Assembly (NCBI GenBank): GCA_020891255.1
Contig: BQFW01000006.1
Location: forward strand, 2,294,001-2,358,000
Reading direction: 5' to 3'
Source of the DNA: Entomortierella parvispora E1425
Taxonomy: Eukaryota > Fungi > Mortierellomycota
DNA length: 64,000 bases
The notes beneath the pieces were generated by a model, which was given only the letters and a program-made list of their open reading frames with translations, searched no databases and had not been told where the DNA came from. Below, in pieces: positions 43,083 to 54,735 of the stretch. Position 1 is the first letter of the stretch; every line of letters starts with the position of its first letter. Position numbers and translations under genes: made by a program.

Positions 43083-43180
43083 GTGCCTGACATTTCCAGC
43101 TTTCCCTTCTTTTTTTTTTTTGTCCATCATCCACCTCTTCTCTTCTCTTCCTTCAAACCACCTCAACAACAACAACAGCA

Positions 43181-44350
43181 ATGGTCAACAAGATCCTTCC
43201 CATCCTGCTCTTGAGCGTCGCTTGCGCCTTTGCCGCCCCTACCCCTAAGGATGGCACCGTCAAGGCCACCCTCAAGCGCCCTGCCAACCCCGTCCAGCTC
43301 AAGGATGTCCACAACCGCGATGTGAGACGCTGGGCCAACTTGGCCACCGGAAGCTCCTCCTCCATCCCCGCCATCAACGCTGATGTCTCCTACTTGATCA
43401 CCGTTGGCTTGGGTACCCCAGCCCAGGATGTCGACCTCATCTTCGACACCGGTTCGTCCGATCTCTGGGTCCAGACCGCCAACTACAACCCCAAGTCCTC
43501 CTCGACCTCCAAGAACCTCGACGAGACCTGGACCATCGAGTACGGCTCTGGTGATGCCAGCGGTAAGGAGTACACCGACATTGCCACCATTGGCAGCTAC
43601 ACCTTCACCCAGGAGTTCGGTATTGCCTCCACTGCTGAGGGTTTCACTGGTGTCGACGGTCTCGTCGGATTCGGACCCGATGATCTCTCGGTCATCACCA
43701 ACAAGGGCGAGAACATCCCCACCCCCGTCGACAACCTTTACTCCTCTGGCCAGATCGGATCGGATGTCATTGGTGTCTACTTCCAGCCCATCACCGATGG
43801 CGGTTCCCAGGAGACCAACGGAGAGATCACCTTTGGAGGTGTCGACTCTACCAAGTACACTGGTGACATCACCTACGTTCCCATCACCACCGCCAGCCCC
43901 GCCAACGAGTACTGGGGTATTGATGTGAGCTCGGTCAAGTACGGCTCCACCTCGGTCACCAGCACCATCCACGGTATTGTTGACACCGGTACGACCTTGA
44001 TCCTCCTCTCCAGCACTGCTGTCAGCGCCTTGTACAAGAACATCTCTGGCGCCAAGCTCGACAACAACTCTGGCTTGTACACCATCCCCGCCTCTGAGGT
44101 CTCCAAGCTCGAGGACATCACCTTCACCATCGGTGGCACTGCCTTCACCTTGACCCCCTCCCAGTACCTCATCCCCGCCAACCAGGTCGCCAACTTGGGC
44201 GGTACCTCCGGCGACACCTACTCCTGGATCGGTTCCTTGGGTGACAACGAGTCTGGCTTGGCTTTCATTCTCGGACAGAAGTTCTTGGAGAACTTCTACT
44301 CTGTCTTTGACACCACCAACAGCCGTGTCGGTCTTGCCGTTGCTGCTTAA
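43181..44350 (+). CDS. Secreted pepsin-family (A1) aspartic protease, polyporopepsin-like, intronless
   Basis: Signal peptide, short propeptide, both catalytic motifs (IFDTGSSDLW; IVDTGTTL), flap EYGSG, C-terminal FYSVFD. Strong C-ending codon bias. Confidence 0.96.
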   Translation: MVNKILPILLLSVACAFAAPTPKDGTVKATLKRPANPVQLKDVHNRDVRRWANLATGSSSSIPAINADVSYLITVGLGTPAQDVDLIFDTGSSDLWVQTANYNPKSSSTSKNLDETWTIEYGSGDASGKEYTDIATIGSYTFTQEFGIASTAEGFTGVDGLVGFGPDDLSVITNKGENIPTPVDNLYSSGQIGSDVIGVYFQPITDGGSQETNGEITFGGVDSTKYTGDITYVPITTASPANEYWGIDVSSVKYGSTSVTSTIHGIVDTGTTLILLSSTAVSALYKNISGAKLDNNSGLYTIPASEVSKLEDITFTIGGTAFTLTPSQYLIPANQVANLGGTSGDTYSWIGSLGDNESGLAFILGQKFLENFYSVFDTTNSRVGLAVAA

Positions 44351-44829
44351 ATGCAAGAGCAACATTCGCGACAATGGGTACTGTCCGCAGCAGGAATTGT
44401 ATTTACGAGGGGGGGATGTTCCCCTGGACCCCCCTTCCCTTCCACATAGTGTACATACGTTTGGATCGCCTTCAAGCCGGCTTGGAGCAATAAAAAAAGT
44501 TACAAAAAAAAAAAAAAAAAAAAAAAACAATGGCCATGAAATTGGAGATTGAAGGAGGCTCAGCAATTTATCTTTCCAAACGCAATGCCGACTAGTTATG
44601 AAAATGAAGAACAAAATAGGATAAAGGCAAACATGGATGGTAGTCGCTGCTGCACCAGATAGGATCCACTCTTGACTTTGTTCGAAAACAGACTTGCAGT
44701 GACATGAGATAGAGTCAAGACGTTCAACTTTTTATGGGATATTACCAATGCAAAATGTGCAGCAAAATGAATGAAAAGAAGGAGGGGGTGGGGAAAAGGG
44801 AGGGAGAGACTTTATGAGTCATTCTATTT

Positions 44830-47169
44830 CTATGCAGCAGAGTGCCGCTTGGAGGGGTTTAACGACGATCGCCATCTTTGGAACCAGTCGCCCCTGAAGG
44901 ACGACGTAGCAGACCTCGATGGAGTCCGCACATGCTCACGACTGACAGGAGGAGAAGAGATTATAGCATTAGATGGCGTAACGGCCTCGTTTGGTAGAGG
45001 AGGCAAGGTCCTGTGGGTTTCTGGAGGGCGCAAGGGCAAAGGACGGTCGATAAAGACGTGCCTCGCATGCGCATCTGCAATCGGCGTCGCTGAAAGCGGT
45101 CGCCCATTGCTTCCGAGGCTATGTCTTCCTGAAGGCACTCGGATATCCGTGATCAATTGCAAGGGAGGCATCGCTGAAGGCGTACCCTCCTCCTGCTGAT
45201 CTTTGCTACTACTGTTGATACTCTCCTCTCGCCTGCTGGATAGACTCGTGTCCGCCAGCAACCGACGTGCTTCGCGCCTGGAGGACGAAGAGTCGGTGCG
45301 AGTGCGGTGTCGTCGAGTAGAATGGGGGGAGGGATGTGATCCTCCGGGGGATGTGGAGTCGGATGAAGACGATGAGGAAGGTTGAGTAGAGGCAGACGAC
45401 GATGAAGGTGAGGGGGTGGATACTGCCGACAGAGTGAATTTGGGTGCGAATGGCGGTCGAAAGACTTTGCTCAGGGCACGGAACCCCTTTGAAAATCTAG
45501 ACCGGGCATTTTTGAAAAACTTTTTCTTCTTCTTGTCTGCCTTTTCTTTGCGACCATTGTCGTTTCTGGGGCCATTGTCATCAGTGTCAGTTCCTGGTAA
45601 TGCAAAGTTCACTGTCGGGTGAATGATAAAAGCCGGCACAAGGTCATCGGGCACTGGAAGGAAGGGTGGGGGTGCTGGAGGACAGATTGCATCCAGGGGT
45701 CCATGACTGCTGCTGCTGCTACTGCTGCTACTGCCGTCTGCGCTGCTACCACCGTGGGATTCCGCAAGCTGCCTGAAATAAAAATAGTCTAGAAAGACCT
45801 CTTCCTCAAGCAGATCGCCCTCGCTGTCCATCTGATACTCGTGGTCTTTCATTGTTTCTGGTCGATCCTGCCTCTCTTTGTCATCAACAGGAAGAGAGTC
45901 GACGTCCGACAGATCGGAATCCAGGTCGGCTGCTTCTGTGTACGCCCACGAGGGTGAGGGAGCTGCGGCGATGGGCGAGGGTGTCTGTTCAGTTGGGGTG
46001 AACAAGGGTGCTGACCGCCGATGTCCCTTGACAAAGCTGTGGCCACCTCCAGCGCCGGGCCAGCCCTGACGCTGTCGTTGGTGAGTAGCGGAAGCTTGTG
46101 TTCCGGGTCTAATGTTTGTGTCTGTTGTTGTCATTGTTGTTGTGGAGCCATAGGAGGTGTTTGGTACGTGGATCGCGTGTGATTCGCGCTCGTGGTGGAC
46201 CAAGGGTCGCACAATGGGGGGACGAGAGCCTTCTTCTCCTATCCTGCCCCTGTGGTCTCTCCCCCCTGACAAAGTCTCTTCGGCAATGATGGCCGCGGTG
46301 GAGGGTTCCATGAACCAGCGGTCAATTTCCTGCAGACCACGACGGTTTGAAAGGGGCGATGAATGACTGCATCCATGGCCGCGTCCCGTCCTGTCGCCAT
46401 GGCCGCCATTGTGACCGGTGCTACTGAAACTCCAGTGGCTCTTTGGGTCACCATCCTGGGGCGGTGTGGGCGCAGTCCTATGTTGAGCGGCCTCTGTAGT
46501 TGTGTGATGGTCCAGCATTTGGAATAGGACATCGTCCAAGGGTCGTCGTGTGCTCTTGGATGGTGTGGGAGATGAGGACGGGGAGGAGGAGGGATAGGTG
46601 GCGGCAGTCAAAGCGGTGGTCGTTCCTTGACACCATGGCAACATTCTTTGGCCAGTACCTCTCTCCCATGGAGTCTGCCATGTATCTTCATCCTCACTGT
46701 CTATTGTTTGCGATCCCGGCGTGGGATTTGAATCCAGAGGGACGTCCGTTCCTTGGGCCCGCCTTCGAATGATGGAGGTCGGAAAAGAGGTGGGACGAGA
46801 TCTTGACCCTGCAGGGGCAGGGGCATGAATCGGATGGCTTTCCATCTCGGGACGACCCTCACTGTCCAGTGCAAATCGGACTCTACGAGCTGTTACTGTT
46901 TTGGGAGGAAGGAGAACCAACGACTTTTTGTTTTGGATACCGTCGTCGTCCCTCCCACAGTCGTCTTTGCCATTGTCCTCAACCTTGTTCTTGTTGTGGT
47001 TGTCCCTGAAGGGTGCGTTCTCTTCTTCTTTTTCTTCGTCGTCTTCGTCTTTGTCTTTATCTCCCCCTTGGTAAAAGTCTGTGTCGTCTTCATCGTCCTC
47101 TTCGCTCTCGTCCTTGTGCTTGTCCTCAATGGGTGGTGGGCCAGACGCTTTGTTATCGTCGGAAAGCAT
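44830..47169 (-). CDS. Hypothetical intrinsically disordered protein (~780 aa, intronless)
   Basis: 2.3-kb open frame from MLSDDNK with acidic, Ser-rich and basic low-complexity blocks, preceded by a long pyrimidine-rich leader. Confidence 0.7.
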   Translation of the reverse strand: MLSDDNKASGPPPIEDKHKDESEEDDEDDTDFYQGGDKDKDEDDEEKEEENAPFRDNHNKNKVEDNGKDDCGRDDDGIQNKKSLVLLPPKTVTARRVRFALDSEGRPEMESHPIHAPAPAGSRSRPTSFPTSIIRRRAQGTDVPLDSNPTPGSQTIDSEDEDTWQTPWERGTGQRMLPWCQGTTTALTAATYPSSSPSSSPTPSKSTRRPLDDVLFQMLDHHTTTEAAQHRTAPTPPQDGDPKSHWSFSSTGHNGGHGDRTGRGHGCSHSSPLSNRRGLQEIDRWFMEPSTAAIIAEETLSGGRDHRGRIGEEGSRPPIVRPLVHHERESHAIHVPNTSYGSTTTMTTTDTNIRPGTQASATHQRQRQGWPGAGGGHSFVKGHRRSAPLFTPTEQTPSPIAAAPSPSWAYTEAADLDSDLSDVDSLPVDDKERQDRPETMKDHEYQMDSEGDLLEEEVFLDYFYFRQLAESHGGSSADGSSSSSSSSSHGPLDAICPPAPPPFLPVPDDLVPAFIIHPTVNFALPGTDTDDNGPRNDNGRKEKADKKKKKFFKNARSRFSKGFRALSKVFRPPFAPKFTLSAVSTPSPSSSSASTQPSSSSSSDSTSPGGSHPSPHSTRRHRTRTDSSSSRREARRLLADTSLSSRREESINSSSKDQQEEGTPSAMPPLQLITDIRVPSGRHSLGSNGRPLSATPIADAHARHVFIDRPLPLRPPETHRTLPPLPNEAVTPSNAIISSPPVSREHVRTPSRSATSSFRGDWFQRWRSSLNPSKRHSAA

Positions 47170-48126
47170 GGGAAGGTTCAACAAGCAGAAAGCAAAAAAA
47201 AAAAAAAAAATCACGAACACAAGAACGTCAAGATTTTTTTTTTTTTTTTGTGCTTTGTTTTCTTTTTTCTCTCTTTCGAGGCGTTTAGCAAAATATGGTG
47301 GACTCTTTTTTTTTTTTTTTTTGGGAGTCTCGCACTGATCTAAGGGGCTTCAAGGGAGTGAGAGAGAGATAGAGAGAGAAAGAGAATAAACCCGTAAAGA
47401 GACGGACGGAATTTGATGGGTGGTTGACTGGAAGGTTAGGGTGATAGTTGGTGGTGGTGGTGCAAAGTTGAGCGAGGGGGTGGTAGGATAGCAAAGAGAG
47501 AAAATTGTTGTTTAAATGAAAGAAAAAAGAGAGAGCGAGAGAGCGAGGAAAAGAGGGGAGAAAGAGAAAGAGAGAGAGCTGCCTGTGAGGTAAGAAAGGG
47601 GCTCTGGGGATTGGGATTGTCCATTTATTTTTATATCACTTTTGAGGGTTGCAGCAGGCAGGGTGGACTTTGGGTGGGCAAGGTAGGTTGGGGAGGGTCC
47701 AACTCTCCCTTAGGCCGACCTGAAATCACCCGGCTTTATTTGGGAGGACTTGACAGCCATTCCTGACGTCTATCAACCAAAAAAAAAGGGACGAGAACAC
47801 GGAGACGGAGAGATATCGACCTGGGAGGGTCGCCGGGGAAGCCGTCAAAGACGCGTCTAAGCAATTGAGGGTGTTGTCTGTGTGTGGTTTGCCCAGAAAG
47901 AGAAGGGAGGAGTAGATATGACAACGAAACGACAAAGGTGTCGTTACACAAAGTTGTCTTTCAGGGCAAAGGGAGAAACATGCACGTCCCAGATGCATCA
48001 AACAAGCGGATGGTTGGTCAATCTACAAAGATCTCTCCGTCTTGGTCACCCAGTCTATATGTATGCTTATTTTGGGCTGACCAAGGGAGTGCATCTCTCC
48101 CCCGTTCTACACACGGGTTTGATATT

Positions 48127-49476
48127 TTATTGAATCTTGACATCGCCCTCGTTCAGTTTCAAAAAGTGTGTGCAAGATTTCAACAGCCTGGCCGTGTTAC
48201 CAAGTCCTCTGCCAATAAAGACGACCTTGCCCGCTTGGTCTAATTCTCCCTGTTCCTGCTGGGCGGTTGCTTCCTTAACATCGTAGAGCTCTTGAACTCC
48301 CTGGATTACAATCTGTGTGCCTTCTGGCCGCTCCGATGGCCTAAGAATGCCTTTGACGCGCAGGATGTCCAGCTTTTGGGAAGGCGGCAAATAGGATGTG
48401 GCGGAAGGATGGTCAAGCTCGTCCAGGCTCAATTCTTCCTCAGGAATCTGATGCTCCCACAGCAGCATCTGCAACCAGTGTTCGAACAACTGCTGATCCA
48501 CTGTTGGGCAATAGAACGTCAACGTCCTGGTCTCGATAGATTCGTCCAGATGATTAGATGATGGTTTCCCTGCAACCGCATGCTCGTGCCCACATCCGTC
48601 TCCATGAACATGGTTTGGGTCGTCGTGAGCATGGTTGTCTCTGTATCCTTTAAGATGCAACTCTCCTTGCTCCAGCTCCTTGGCACGAACAGCATCAAAC
48701 GCGGCAATATCGAGTACAAAGTTCAGATCAACCTTTGAATGCTGAGTCCTGACGATCTGTGCCACGCCGTTCATGGCTCTACAGTCGGCCTCTAATTGAT
48801 CGACCTCCTCCTCGCTGATGAGGTCAGTCTTGTTCAGAATCAGTCGATCCGCCATGGCGATCTGCTTTGCCGTCTCGTTCAAGCTTCCGTCTTCCTTCTC
48901 GATTGCCAATTCCTTGCGGACGTTTTTTGAATCGACCAACGTCACGATGCCGTCCAGATAGATATCGCTGCCTAGATCATCATCCATCCAAAAGATGGAC
49001 GCGATGGGGCCTGGATCGGCCAAGCCAGTCGTCTCCAGTAGGATGTAATCAAACTTGCCCTTCTTCTTCATCAGGTTCTCGATCGCCAGGACGCCATTGT
49101 CCTTGACAGTGCAGCAGAGACAGCCGTTCTTTAACTCTAGCCACTCCTCAACGACTTCTCCTCCCATGCCAACGTTCATGGCCTGATCAATCCCGCCCGA
49201 GTCGCCAAACTCGTTCAGGATGACGGCCACCTTGAAGTTGTGCTTCTCTGTGAGGATGTAGTCGAGCAGCGTTGACTTGCCAGATCCAAGGAACCCAGTG
49301 ATGATGGTGATAGGGATTTTTTTCGTGGGGCGCGAGTCGGCTGCGGACACGGCAGAAGCTGCAGTCTCGCCCACTTCTGGGACAAGGTCTGGAATATCGT
49401 CGTCAATGTCACTTCCGAGTTCCTGTGTATCCTGGGCTACAGCCAAGGGCGGGCAATCGTCGTCAGAGTTGCTCAT
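48127..49476 (-). CDS. ZNG1: COG0523/CobW-family Zn-regulated GTPase metallochaperone (449 aa, intronless)
   Basis: GFLGSGKST, NEFG, GCLCC (CxCC), ETTGLADP, NKTD, His-rich linker, CobW C-terminal domain (ILRVKG...QGV). Confidence 0.95.
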   Translation of the reverse strand: MSNSDDDCPPLAVAQDTQELGSDIDDDIPDLVPEVGETAASAVSAADSRPTKKIPITIITGFLGSGKSTLLDYILTEKHNFKVAVILNEFGDSGGIDQAMNVGMGGEVVEEWLELKNGCLCCTVKDNGVLAIENLMKKKGKFDYILLETTGLADPGPIASIFWMDDDLGSDIYLDGIVTLVDSKNVRKELAIEKEDGSLNETAKQIAMADRLILNKTDLISEEEVDQLEADCRAMNGVAQIVRTQHSKVDLNFVLDIAAFDAVRAKELEQGELHLKGYRDNHAHDDPNHVHGDGCGHEHAVAGKPSSNHLDESIETRTLTFYCPTVDQQLFEHWLQMLLWEHQIPEEELSLDELDHPSATSYLPPSQKLDILRVKGILRPSERPEGTQIVIQGVQELYDVKEATAQQEQGELDQAGKVVFIGRGLGNTARLLKSCTHFLKLNEGDVKIQ

Positions 49477-49563
49477 GTTGCTGTCAATGTGCGGTGAAGA
49501 ATGAAAGAAGCAAAGCCATGCACGAATGGCACTATTTGCCTCGGTCTCACTCACAGCGTCATG

Positions 49564-49591
49564 GCACGTGACACTCGATCTGATCACGTGC
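49564..49591. promoter_or_regulatory. Inverted pair of RTCACGTG E-boxes in the ZNG1/NELFCD bidirectional promoter
   Basis: GCACGTGA (49564-49571), 12-bp spacer, TCACGTGC (49584-49591). Confidence 0.5.
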
Positions 49592-49749
49592 AATATGCAT
49601 TTGGCTTTTTGATCATGCCTCCCAGCACTGTTGCCATCGCCACCAACCAAAGCAACCTCAACCCCCTGGACGAAGCAAGGCCTTGTCATTCTTGTCATTC
49701 TTCTATCGACCACAGAGGCAAAGACAGGATCAACAACACTCAATTCACC

Positions 49750-52555
49750 ATGGCTACAGTAAGGCGTGCTCTCTCGTTCTCGCTGCATGAGATTTGATCT
49801 GACCAAGGACCGCGACAAACCATTGTCCTCCAATCATGACCATGGATTCTAACGCGTTTCCGATGGCGGATATGGGCTTTCTCTACTTTTTTTTTTTGCT
49901 ACTCTCGTCTTTCTAGAATACAGAGAGCAATGTGGATCAGATGATGCGCTCATTTCAGGAGCCGGATTCGATTCTGGAACCCAACATTCTGGACACCATC
50001 AGTGCATTCATCAAAGAGGGCGGCAAGCCACTAATGCTCGTTAATGCACTTTCGAGCAGCTATGTGGGCATGCCAGAGATGTGCAACCTCATGTCGGGAT
50101 GGGCACGCGACTTCGATATCGACCCTGTTGATGTCATGCAGGAAGTTCTGAAGGAGCAGCTCATGGACCGATTTGATCCTGAGAGCGTCGATAGTAAATT
50201 CATGGCTGGATCGGTAAGGAGAGCGTCCCACTACTGCCTCCATATCTCAGAAATACTTTCGGCGGATAGGTCTAACCCTTCCACCGTGATTGCAACAACT
50301 CTAGGGAACACCGGACTGGCTGTTGGTCATGATTCAACATCCATTCTGGAGATCTGTCATCTATGAGCTTTCAGAAAAGCATCAAAAGTGCGCCCTTCTC
50401 AACTTTGCGATTCAGGTAGACAATCGCCATCAGATGATGTATCTTGAGATCTCACATGGCACAACCCCTCTGAACGTCTCGCTTCTTTGCTCTCCTTTAT
50501 GTTGTCGCTAATAGCGTATCTCGGATGCCGGATACCAGGGAGAAATTGCAAGTGTGGCAACAGCATCAACGTTTGTGAACGTATTCTCAGGAGTACTAGT
50601 CGACTCTCTGGATAAGTTGCGGGAAGAGGACGACGTTGGACTGTTGGATAGGCTTCCGGATTTGCTGGTGAGTTCACTTGAACTTGTTTTCGCCTGCTGA
50701 GAAGAGAAGCAATACTGACACTGTTCATCTTGTTCTGACTGCAACCCTTTGCAGAAAGTATGCTGTCAAAGTGAACACACCTATCTCTACACGCAAGTCT
50801 TGCTATTCCGACTTATGAAGACAGACAGAGGACTTCCATTGAAGCGGATATCCAAGGAGCTGGAATCCGGCGTGCTTGAAAAACACAACAAGTAATGAGG
50901 AAAACAGATGGCTTTTCTTGGTCCATTCATTCAGAGACAACTTTACTCACCCATTTCTCTCTGGATTCCTCTAGACCACCACTTATTTCTATCTTACGAA
51001 TGCTGCTTGCAGGGGCGTCTTCAAATGTGGCCAGTGCAATCTCTGCCATCCTACAATCAAGAGTGCCTTCTCCAGGAGACGTCATGCAGGTAAGGATGCT
51101 ATATTCGTTAGACCAATACCTCATGCCTGGCTTTGTTTTTCTCTACTAACTAGACCATCCACGTTTTCAATCGCAATTTCAACTTTTAGCTTCATAGAGC
51201 TTACACGAGTCCGGATCCACCTTCTACATACTTTTTACGGGATCCAGACTTTTTTGGTATGGTTGCTTTCCATGAACATGGACAGATATGAATGACAAAA
51301 CGCCAAATCTGACCACTGTTGCTCTCCATTACCTAGAAATTATGTTGTCGTCGATCTTTGTACCAAGTTTCAAGGGAGGAGTAGTCAGACAAGAACACAA
51401 GGACAAATATCTATGGCTTGTGGCCTACGCTGCCAGCGTGCATGAGGAAGACGACAAAGTAACGGACACATCAGAAGTGGAACCAACATACCAAGCCTTG
51501 CGTGCTCTTGAGGATACTCTCTCAAAACGTGCTGCAGGAACAGACGTGACTCCTATCCTGGGTAACCTTTTACGCGCCATTGAGTACGTTTGACCTCCTC
51601 ATCTTTCCTGGCTTGTGATTTAGTCACTGAAAGAAAGATGTCTGACCACGCTCTTTGATATTTCTTGAAATTATTAGAACCCCAGTGGCTTCGATGGCAC
51701 TTCTTTACTGGATTCAGTTTGTCATCACGGAAACAAGCTATATTGAGACGTACTTCAGAACACACGAGGTCCCTGTACCTTTGCTTCTGATTGAAGAGGT
51801 AAATCTAGGAAGCTAGAGATGACTGTTGTGGGAACCCATGGCATGTTTGACCGACTGGACCCGTCCACTCAACCTTTTGACTCTCTTTCAATTTGATTTA
51901 TTAGATGGCCTACAAGCACCCCCTGCAACAAACGGCCATCTTTGCGACCCTGGTCGACTTTTTCGAAGCTCCGTTGGAGCTGAATCCTGAAATTATGGTA
52001 GGAAATAGCTGAATAGAATCGGCGTGTATTATGGATTCAGCAAACTTACATGCACTACTTGTGGGACCCTAGATGACATACCGCAAATCGATCTTGGACA
52101 GGATGATCTATTTGATGCAGCTGAATTATGTCATACCTGTCCTGGATTACATTTGCAGTCGGGCACGCAAGATTGATCAATCACTCTCGATGCACTTTGT
52201 CAAAAAGGTGCTGGAGATGACCAAAGGACCCTATTCTCGGAAATTCATCGAGGGTATGGGCGAGATGATTAGCGAGATTGTGGAGGTGGTCAAGAAGACT
52301 GACGCGGAGCCTGTGGTGCGAGGATGGATCGGTAAGTCAAATCCCGGTGCCTTGGGTTCCTACTTCTTTTCTTTCAGGTTTTTTTTTCTTTTTTTTAAAT
52401 CCTATTTTACTTTTGAAATAGACGATGTCGTGACCCAGCCAGTGGATATCGAAATGCAGGACACGACTGATGCCTCAGGGTCACTCCTGTCCGCGGATGT
52501 CGGGATGAGCACGATCTACGATGTCAAACGTCGCCTTGAAGAACCTCGCAGATGA
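49750..52555 (+). CDS. NELFCD: Negative elongation factor C/D (TH1-like), ~12 exons
   Basis: DSILEPNILDTI..F..GGKP, FDPESVD, TPDWLLVMIQHPFWRSVIYELSE.H..C.LLNF, ISDAGYQGEIASV, YTSPDPPST..LR.P.F, RKSILDRMIYL...YVIPVLDYI, GPYS: these motifs follow human NELF-C/D in order along its length (recalled alignment). Confidence 0.88.
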
Positions 52556-53211
52556 AGAGTCGCTAGGAAGATAATAAAGGAAACAACAACCCAATGTGCT
52601 AGTTTGTGTCATGGAGAGAGAGGACTCTGGCTACAGGGCTCAAGGACGCAGATGGTGTAGTGTAGAATGATGCGAAAGGGAACTCGGTTGTTAGCTGCTC
52701 CTTCAGGGTTGTGGCAGAAGAATGGTCAAGGATCATCACATTTCAGGCCCCTGAACTTTCTTGCCTGTTGACCTCTTGTGGAACACCCAAAGAGAACCTC
52801 GTCTGACCGATGCTTGCCCCTTCTACCCTCATTCATTTCCCTCCCAATATCCAGAGCCCTTTGCAAAAGAGCCCCTTCATTTGAAGGCCATGGCCAACAA
52901 AACATCGCACAGATTTTTGTTCAATCGAAGCAGAGGTTTATGTACAAGGACAGCTATGAACAAAGCACAAATCAGAAGCAGACAAAAGAAAGCAGCTAGG
53001 GTACAAGGTACAGCATTGAAGAAAAAAGTAAACTAGGAAAAACTAGACGCGTATGCAAACGAGCAAAGGAAAAAAAAAGAGTAAAAGGAAAGCAATGAAA
53101 AAGAGACTTTGCGAAACGGGAAAGGGAATATGAAGGAAAGAGAGAGAAAGAGAGAAAGAGAGAGAGAGGAGAGAGCATCTTTCTGTCCATTTCTTTTTAA
53201 ACCCTCGTTGT

Positions 53212-54735
53212 CTATGCATGGCCAAGGTAGTCGGCATCAGAGTAGGCGACCAAGAAGGGGGTGAAGGCGGACATGGCCTTGTTCTTGTCTTCTTTGGCTT
53301 GCTTGTTGGTATGGCGATGGATTCGCACATGTTGGTTCAGGTTGTCGGATCGTGAGAACCGCTTGGAGCAATCTTCCTTTGGGCACGCAAAGGGCTTCTC
53401 TTGCGTGTGAATGGATCGGACGTGGCGCTTCAGGTGCTCGGATCGCTTGAAGATCTTGCCACACTCCTCGTGTTCGCACGTAAAGACCTTGCCGCCAGCT
53501 GCTGCCAGCGAGTTCATGTCCAATTGACTCGAGACCCGGCGACCACGCGAGCGCTTGGGCGAAGAGGAAGAGCTGGTGGAGGTAGAAGACAACTCACCGT
53601 TCTCACGCTTGATGATCTTGTTCAAGGACGAAGCTGAGGAACTTGAAGAAAGAGAGTGGGTGGATGAGGAAGAAGTTCGCAATGGGTGGATCATTTCCAT
53701 GGATCCGTAATCCTCGTCCATGCTGAGACCATGGTAAGCTGGCGAAGAAACCGAGTGGTGGTGACCATGGCTGTGGTGGTGATGATGGCTCAAGGACATT
53801 GAAGGCTGGCTCAGCGTCCGGGACAAGTCGCAGGTGGCAGCGCTGTGACCTTGAGTAAAGGGCGATCTTGGTGACATGGACGCCAATGAAGAAGCCGATG
53901 AAGACGAGCAAGAGACCTCGGACATGTTGGAGATGGACGAGTTGGAGTAGCTGTGGGTGGGTCGGAAGTGCTGGAGCTGCTGCTGTTGCATCGCGACCTG
54001 GGACGCGTACAAGGCTGGTGATTCTGCGGATGTGGTCGAGACACCCCCCATGGAAGCCTCACAGATTTCTGAGAGTTCGCTGCCGGACAAGGACCGAGCC
54101 ATGGCTGCGAGCATGTATCCCGTCGAGGACGCAATGTGGTCGTTGGTCGAGAACTCGCTCTTCACGTGCTGAGAAGACTGCGTCAGCGTCGGGGAGCCCA
54201 TCACGTACTCGGTGCCGGCATGGATCTGCTGGATATGGTGGTGTTGAGCGAGGATGTGTTGCTGGATCATCTGCTGCTGTTGCTGTGGTGGGTGGTAGTC
54301 GACCATCGTGGACTCGCAGTCAAACATCATGTTATTCTGATTACCAGAGCCAGGCAGATCCATGAACATGGATGGGGGGGATGCTGCGTGATCACCCAAG
54401 ATAGCCAATTGATGGTTTTGATCCATATCCTGCGAAGAGCCCAGAACTTCCGCAAAGGACGAAGCTTGAAAGTGTTGGATCATAGGGGCGGTATGCGATC
54501 GAGAGGATGGAGGCGAAGGGCTTGGTGAAGAAGAGTCGGTGTTGTCCATCTGCTGAGACTGGAGGAGTTGTTGGTGATAGATCTGCTGCTGCTGCTGCAT
54601 GTGCTGTTGTTGAAGCTGAAGCTGGTGAAATTGATGGGCGCGCTGCTTCTGGTTGTGCTGGATCGCATAGAGCTGCTGTTGTTGTTGAGCAGCTGTGGTC
54701 GAGGATGAAGGTGTTGCGAGTGTCAAAGCAGTCAT
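53212..54735 (-). CDS. C2H2 zinc-finger transcription factor, Msn2/Seb1-like, with polyQ and His tracts (507 aa, intronless)
   Basis: [56 protein letters not shown]; the recognition helices (EHLKRH, RSDNL) are STRE-binder-like. Confidence 0.88.

Follow-up and report, generated by a model that had tools for sequence, protein, structure and literature searches.

Entomortierella parvispora carries a full-length, constrained gene for NELF-C/D

The NELF-C/D gene and its neighborhood

We analyzed a window of 64,000 nucleotides (nt) on contig BQFW01000006.1 of Entomortierella parvispora E1425. A gene for NELF-C/D, a protein of the TH1 family, lies on the plus strand of this window, divergent from a gene for a cobW-family GTPase. 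The features of the locus are listed here by window position, with residue numbers of the predicted protein.

48127-49476, minus strand: cobW-family GTPase gene, divergent from NELF-C/D; Pfam cobW/CobW_C
49477-49749, no strand: intergenic region of 273 bp between NELF-C/D and the divergent cobW-family GTPase gene, from annotated gene positions
49750-52555, plus strand: complete coding region of NELF-C/D (TH1), derived from splice signals and reading frame; 12 exons separated by 11 GT-AG introns, encoding 580 aa and ending in TGA
49750-49758, plus strand: exon 1, a mini-exon of 9 nt (Met-Ala-Thr), followed in frame by a 158-nt intron with donor GTAAGG and acceptor TAG
49917-50213, plus strand: exon 2, residues 4-102, which make up the bulk of the N-terminal helical domain; Pfam TH1 55.4 bits, profile 42-130
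50305-50415, plus strand: exon 3, residues 103-139; Pfam TH1 41.4 bits, profile 135-170
50515-50667, plus strand: exon 4, residues 140-190, with ISDAGYQGEI at 50518-50547; Pfam TH1 27.5 bits
50755-50891, plus strand: exon 5, residues 191-236, last codon split; Pfam TH1 26.8 bits, profile 222-266
50975-51089, plus strand: exon 6, residues 236-274; within the full-length human alignment
51190-51256, plus strand: exon 7, residues 275-297, last codon split; the preceding intron (51090-51189) is missing in Gryganskiella
51337-51583, plus strand: exon 8, residues 297-379; Pfam TH1 25.4 bits, and a match to NELF-C/D in the PDB
51441-51467, plus strand: beta-hairpin within exon 8, residues 332-340, acidic here and basic in human NELF-C; predicted by the AlphaFold2 model
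51678-51798, plus strand: exon 9, residues 379-419; Pfam TH1 13.7 bits, profile 413-449
51905-51997, plus strand: exon 10, residues 420-450; within the full-length human alignment
52073-52331, plus strand: exon 11, residues 451-537, where the horseshoe ends in HEAT repeats and a polar patch is conserved in part; Pfam TH1 48 bits, human NELF-C/D E 1e-7
52422-52555, plus strand: exon 12, residues 537-580 plus stop; a disordered acidic/Ser-rich linker, then a basic C-terminal helix (561-576) starting at 52493

All 11 introns begin with GT, end with AG and measure 75-158 nt, and the 580-codon frame is intact in both a three-frame translation and the raw DNA (49700-52800). Public annotation of the contig gives an identical span, a 580-aa product and a Pfam TH1 assignment. 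Translation of our joined exon model reproduced GJJ72418.1 letter for letter. Expression and splicing are predicted, on the basis of conservation and the depositor's annotation.

The closest comparison came from Gryganskiella cystojenkinii, whose protein is 94% identical to that of E. parvispora without gaps and is encoded beside the same neighbors. The mini-exon has a counterpart there, with the N-terminus MATNTESNVDQMM, a GT..AG intron and identity at 8 of its 9 nt. Gryganskiella lacks exactly intron 6 and reads straight through it, which independently confirms the junction of exons 6 and 7. Other full-length Mortierellaceae entries are 59-85% identical to the E. parvispora protein. Nothing of substance sets E. 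parvispora NELF-C/D apart from these entries; intron 6 is present here and absent from Gryganskiella. The divergent cobW and NELF-C/D arrangement is also found in Gryganskiella, and the 49477-49749 interval is presumed to be a bidirectional promoter of the two genes. An Rfam scan of the whole 64-kb window gave no match, 7SK included.

Orthology, selective constraint and origin

The full-length protein matched Pfam TH1 (PF04858) with an E-value of 3.7e-116 and 389.6 bits, against a cut-off of 24 bits, over profile positions 31-572 of 579. Human NELF-C/D was matched over residues 11-512 (E 8e-88), which confirmed the full-length, collinear similarity claimed in a sequence-only reading of this DNA. 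A reciprocal search, named there as a check, returned TH1/NELFCD: all eight PDB sequences with E < 0.001 were NELF-C/D chains, the best at E 8e-88. Single exons told the same story. Seven matched PF04858 collinearly (profile 42-551 of 579), six of them exceeding the 24-bit gathering score alone; exon 6 searched alone against Pfam gave no match. In searches of single exons against solved structures, human NELF-C/D was the sole significant family (E 5e-11, 5e-5 and 1e-7, with a further 0.01 borderline). Exon 2 matched human NELF-C/D and the NELF-C/D fragment of 8jj6, a NELF-BCE structure, at E 3e-11 to 5e-11. An exhaustive homolog search with exon 2 (91 aa) yielded 179 cluster representatives at E ≤ 0.001, and the database relatives carry the names NELF-C/D or TH1. 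The ESM Atlas, queried with exon 2, gave no usable match. The E. parvispora protein is a true, full-length NELF-C/D ortholog of the TH1 family.

Two finer points of the sequence-only reading fared less well. The decapeptide ISDAGYQGEI is indeed identical to its human counterpart. To call it invariant was somewhat overstated, since only I141, G145 and E149 are at least 90% conserved across 54 eukaryotic homologs. The fungal protein was also described as NELF-D-like for want of an acidic N-terminal extension. This distinction is not meaningful: human NELF-C and NELF-D are start-codon variants nine residues apart, and both contain the acidic stretch. The fungal protein has 10 residues ahead of the conserved core, compared with 45 in human NELF-C.

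The gene is intact and under strong purifying selection. Between E. parvispora and Gryganskiella, the proteins are 93.8% identical and gap-free; exons are 82% identical and introns 31%. Third codon positions hold 262 of the 316 nucleotide differences, and dN/dS is 0.02-0.03, with dS close to saturation. These values bear on the idea of a decaying remnant, either a pseudogene or a relic made dispensable when the rest of NELF was lost. Several losses of NELF in eukaryotes, yeasts among them (10.1101/2023.02.19.529146), lend that idea some plausibility. Yet the frame is open through all 580 codons and 11 canonical introns, amino acid change is strongly suppressed at saturated synonymous divergence, and full-length orthologs occur in ∼30 Mortierellaceae and many other early-diverging fungi. 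We consider decay very improbable.

Still more improbable is that the gene came from a contaminating scaffold or by recent transfer from an animal or protist, and we found no evidence favoring either source. The contig is 2.44 Mb long (2,436,474 bp) and is one of 19 in assembly GCA_020891255.1 (BQFW01000001-19, 38.7 Mb, GC 49.4%; PMC8759367); the paper describing the genome also gives an RNA-seq dataset, DRA013164. GC content in the window is 46-54%, near the genome's 49.4%. Microsynteny is kept with two other genera of Mortierellaceae: the order cobW (minus), TH1 (plus), zf-C2H2 (minus) recurs in Gryganskiella cystojenkinii, and TH1 next to zf-C2H2 recurs in Linnemannia hyalina. Maximum-likelihood analysis of 26 named sequences placed E. 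parvispora NELF-C/D inside a Mortierellaceae clade with 100/100 support. This clade grouped with Umbelopsis, Mucorales, Endogonales, Glomeromycota, Basidiobolus and Syncephalis, with weak deep support, and animals formed a clade of their own (100/100) that lay outside this weakly supported set of fungi. The large fungal contig, the conserved gene order and the tree placement together exclude contamination, which the sequence-only reading had raised as a concern, and recent transfer. NELF-C/D is a resident fungal gene, inherited vertically within fungi.

Predicted fold and departures from the human protein

An AlphaFold2 model was built on a 54-sequence alignment (mean pLDDT 85). It is all-helical except for the small hairpin at residues 332-340; residues 545-561 are disordered (pLDDT < 50) and are followed by a terminal helix, 561-576. 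The protein has the fold of NELF-C/D: in a Foldseek search against the PDB, the best 11 matches were all NELF-C/D chains (E 1e-22 to 5e-6). Target-normalized TM scores were 0.66-0.70 for chains of the NELF-AC core (5l3x_B, 8uis_W) and 0.77 for the 8jj6 NELF-BCE fragment. Whole-chain TM was ∼0.5, probably because two modules differ in orientation.

In the model, the protein is a helical scaffold of two modules, an N-terminal helical domain and a horseshoe with HEAT repeats. The first (residues ∼11-147) is the equivalent of the human fragment crystallized with NELF-B and NELF-E (8jj6). Conservation with animals and protists is highest here, at a mean identity of 0.37 versus 0.28 for the AC core. 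The second (residues ∼148-512) is the equivalent of the part of human NELF-C that wraps NELF-A; in the animal complex, NELF-A helices lie buried in a horseshoe made up of NELF-C residues 183-590 (PMC4940160). Within the animal complex, the AC lobe lies near RPB8 with the secondary channel blocked, and the BE lobe lies near RPB5 (PMC11881899).

Identity to human NELF-C/D (NELFCD/TH1L; PDB 5L3X, 6GML, 8JJ6) is ∼30%. The two proteins share collinearity over 11-512, ISDAGYQGEI, the two-module helical fold, the beta-hairpin and the HEAT repeats. They differ in the hairpin, which is shorter and acidic in the fungus, and in the C-terminal tail, where the fungal sequence has a disordered linker followed by a basic helix.

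A further difference concerns RNA-binding patches 1-4 of human NELF-C, which comprise nine basic residues (Vos et al. 2016). Their positions were read from a direct human alignment, as numbering of the patch-1 residues via a bovine TH1-like paralog is unreliable.

Human R291: N in E. parvispora
Human K315: R (R277) in E. parvispora, the sole position of patches 1-4 that is still basic
Human K371, K372 and K374 (patch 2): D, gap and gap in E. parvispora
Human K384 and K388: E and Q in E. parvispora
Human R419: E in E. parvispora
Human R506: L in E. parvispora

Eight of the nine basic residues are lost in E. parvispora, and most of the sampled fungi have similarly non-basic residues at these positions. 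Polar patch 5 survives in part, with human K494, D498, D526 and S528 corresponding to fungal K455, D459, D485 and S487. The basic patches 1-4 are a feature of the animal complex and do not define the family. None of the fungi sampled conserves the eight lost residues, so the fungal protein lacks part of the animal mechanism. Conserved partner-binding regions and only partly kept RNA-binding patches are shared with the 'core NELF' that Chivu et al. describe for non-animal eukaryotes and with the Dictyostelium and Chlorella homologs noted by Vos et al. (2016).

The C-terminal basic helix has the motif STI(Q/Y)(D/E)xK(R/K)RL(D/E)ExRR in Mortierellaceae and is preceded by a linker whose length varies. 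Other early-diverging fungi end in a shorter basic helix, and animals have none. Suggestions that it serves as a nuclear-localization signal or as a partner-docking motif are only guesses.

Distribution and possible role

Fungal NELF-C/D is not new. GJJ72418.1 is named 'negative elongation factor C/D' in GenBank, as are the proteins of ∼30 other Mortierellaceae. TH1 proteins are listed for Mucorales, Umbelopsis, Endogonales, Glomeromycota, Zoopagomycota and Basidiobolus; 'TH1 protein' entries come from Umbelopsis, Jimgerdemannia, Calcarisporiella, Hesseltinella, Mycotypha, Basidiobolus, Dimargaris, Dispira, Syncephalis, Geosiphon and Acaulospora. Outside fungi, the family is found in Amoebozoa, Heterolobosea, Rhizaria, choanoflagellates, ichthyosporeans, insects and filarial nematodes. 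Homologs in Dictyostelium and Chlorella were noted some years ago (Vos et al. 2016). NELF-B and NELF-C/D are widespread in eukaryotes, and a minimal core of the two, with its 'proto-pause' model, has been published (Chivu et al. 2024, bioRxiv, 10.1101/2023.02.19.529146). The candidate files of that survey hold 16 fungal NELF-C/D headers, including Rhizopus, Rhizophagus, Batrachochytrium and Spizellomyces and none from Ustilago, Cryptococcus or Neurospora, as well as 14 fungal NELF-B headers. Rhizopus and Rhizophagus have NELF-B candidates alongside NELF-C/D candidates, and three fungal 'NELF-A-like' sequences are given. Mortierellomycota lie outside the dataset, as the string 'Mortierella' appears in none of the supplementary files. 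With the protein already named in databases and the subunit already surveyed in early-diverging fungi, E. parvispora NELF-C/D is an unexceptional representative of a known family.

How such a protein works in a fungus must be judged by analogy. The sequence-only reading knew of no functional study of a fungal NELF, and our literature search, covering any fungus, likewise found none. To our knowledge, all functional work on NELF has been done in animals, and no pausing data exist for fungi that retain it. We favor, with some confidence, the view that this vertically inherited, constrained NELF-C/D acts in a NELF-type complex that slows early elongation by Pol II. Both modules are conserved in the fungus, from which we infer that on Pol II-DSIF, as in animals, NELF-C/D would bridge a NELF-B protein and probably also one resembling NELF-A. 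Relevant to the former, residues 11-144 in the N-terminal domain align with the NELF-C/D fragment of the 8jj6 'NELF-BCE complex' (E 2e-25). Once assembled, it would dock onto the Pol II-DSIF elongation complex close to the secondary channel and may slow early elongation there, as in the 'core NELF' or 'proto-pause' model for non-animal eukaryotes. Pausing indexes are higher in species with the B plus C/D core (10.1101/2023.02.19.529146). With the basic patches absent, any RNA contact would need to be made via other subunits or surfaces.

The main competing view accepts a genuine NELF-C/D and gives it a job in fungi other than promoter-proximal pausing, such as RNA 3'-end processing, cap-binding/Integrator-coupled termination or a role outside transcription. 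We regard this as possible, though appreciably less probable than an action on early elongation. It would fit the loss of the RNA-binding patches of human NELF-AC and the fungus-specific basic C-terminal helix. It would also fit the survey result that NELF-E and NELF-A's HDAg-like, Pol II-binding region, both needed for strong animal pausing, are essentially confined to animals and their closest relatives (10.1101/2023.02.19.529146). NELF subunits can have pausing-independent roles, an example being a cytoplasmic function of NELF-B (PMC10591015). On the other side, the fold as a whole is conserved, and so are the two modules that bind partners. Mortierellaceae might also keep a complete four-subunit NELF (C/D, B, A-like and E-like) that imposes regulated promoter-proximal pausing. 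This seems doubtful, and less probable than a different job. If true, the full complex would have arisen before fungi and animals diverged, contrary to the idea that NELF-E and focal pausing are animal inventions.

Textbooks still call NELF 'metazoan-specific'. The same term persists in recent structural work (PMC11881899). Soil fungi that can be cultured retain a strongly constrained NELF-C/D, which shows yeasts and other Dikarya to be the exception. Its retention also makes Mortierellaceae or Mucorales possible systems for studying an ancestral role of NELF that preceded animal-type pausing. What remains of value in the fungal protein is its biology and its fungus-specific differences, namely the loss of RNA-binding patches and the presence of a basic helix at the C-terminus.

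A Pfam scan of ten unusually long or rearranged TH1 homologs found no COBRA1 domain in any of them. The same ten proteins carry an occasional Zn-cluster, WH2, kinase or WW domain, probably reflecting gene-model fusions.

Neighbouring genes

On one side, NELF-C/D is adjoined by a cobW-family gene and, further out, by two long open reading frames that are putative genes; on the other lies a zinc-finger gene.

window 43163-44614, - strand, long open reading frame (putative gene), 483 aa
window 44830-47220, - strand, long open reading frame (putative gene), 796 aa
window 48127-49476, - strand, cobW/COG0523-family GTPase gene, single-exon, 449 aa
window 53212-54735, - strand, C2H2 zinc-finger gene, single-exon, 507 aa

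The GTPase gene and NELF-C/D are divergently transcribed, with a 273-bp spacer between them, and this pairing is also kept in Gryganskiella. The zinc-finger protein is Gln/His/Ser-rich, with two C2H2 fingers at its C-terminal end; a zinc-finger gene likewise adjoins NELF-C/D at the equivalent position in Gryganskiella and Linnemannia. With an E-value limit of 0.001, Pfam gave no hit for either of the two long reading frames.

Intron 6

In a comparison of two genes, intron 6 of E. parvispora NELF-C/D (window 51090-51189) was found to be precisely absent from the 94% identical orthologue of Gryganskiella cystojenkinii. This difference between close genera is a recent gain or loss.

C-terminal tail and additional domains

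NELF-C/D ends in a predicted helix.

window 52493-52552, residues 561-580, basic C-terminal helix (predicted), …STIYDVKRRLEEPRR

This helix is conserved in all Mortierellaceae NELF-C/D proteins, where it follows a Ser/Thr/Pro-rich linker of variable length. The protein also terminates in a basic helix in other early-diverging fungi, albeit a shorter one, whereas the C-terminus of animal NELF-C/D is unrelated.

Additional domains occur in some TH1 proteins of other eukaryotes (P0126, P0118 and P0117, matched with exon 2). The Planoprotostelium protein has a Zn(2)-Cys(6) cluster; the others have WH2 plus a kinase fragment, or WW. Such combinations may reflect fused gene models and not true domain architectures.
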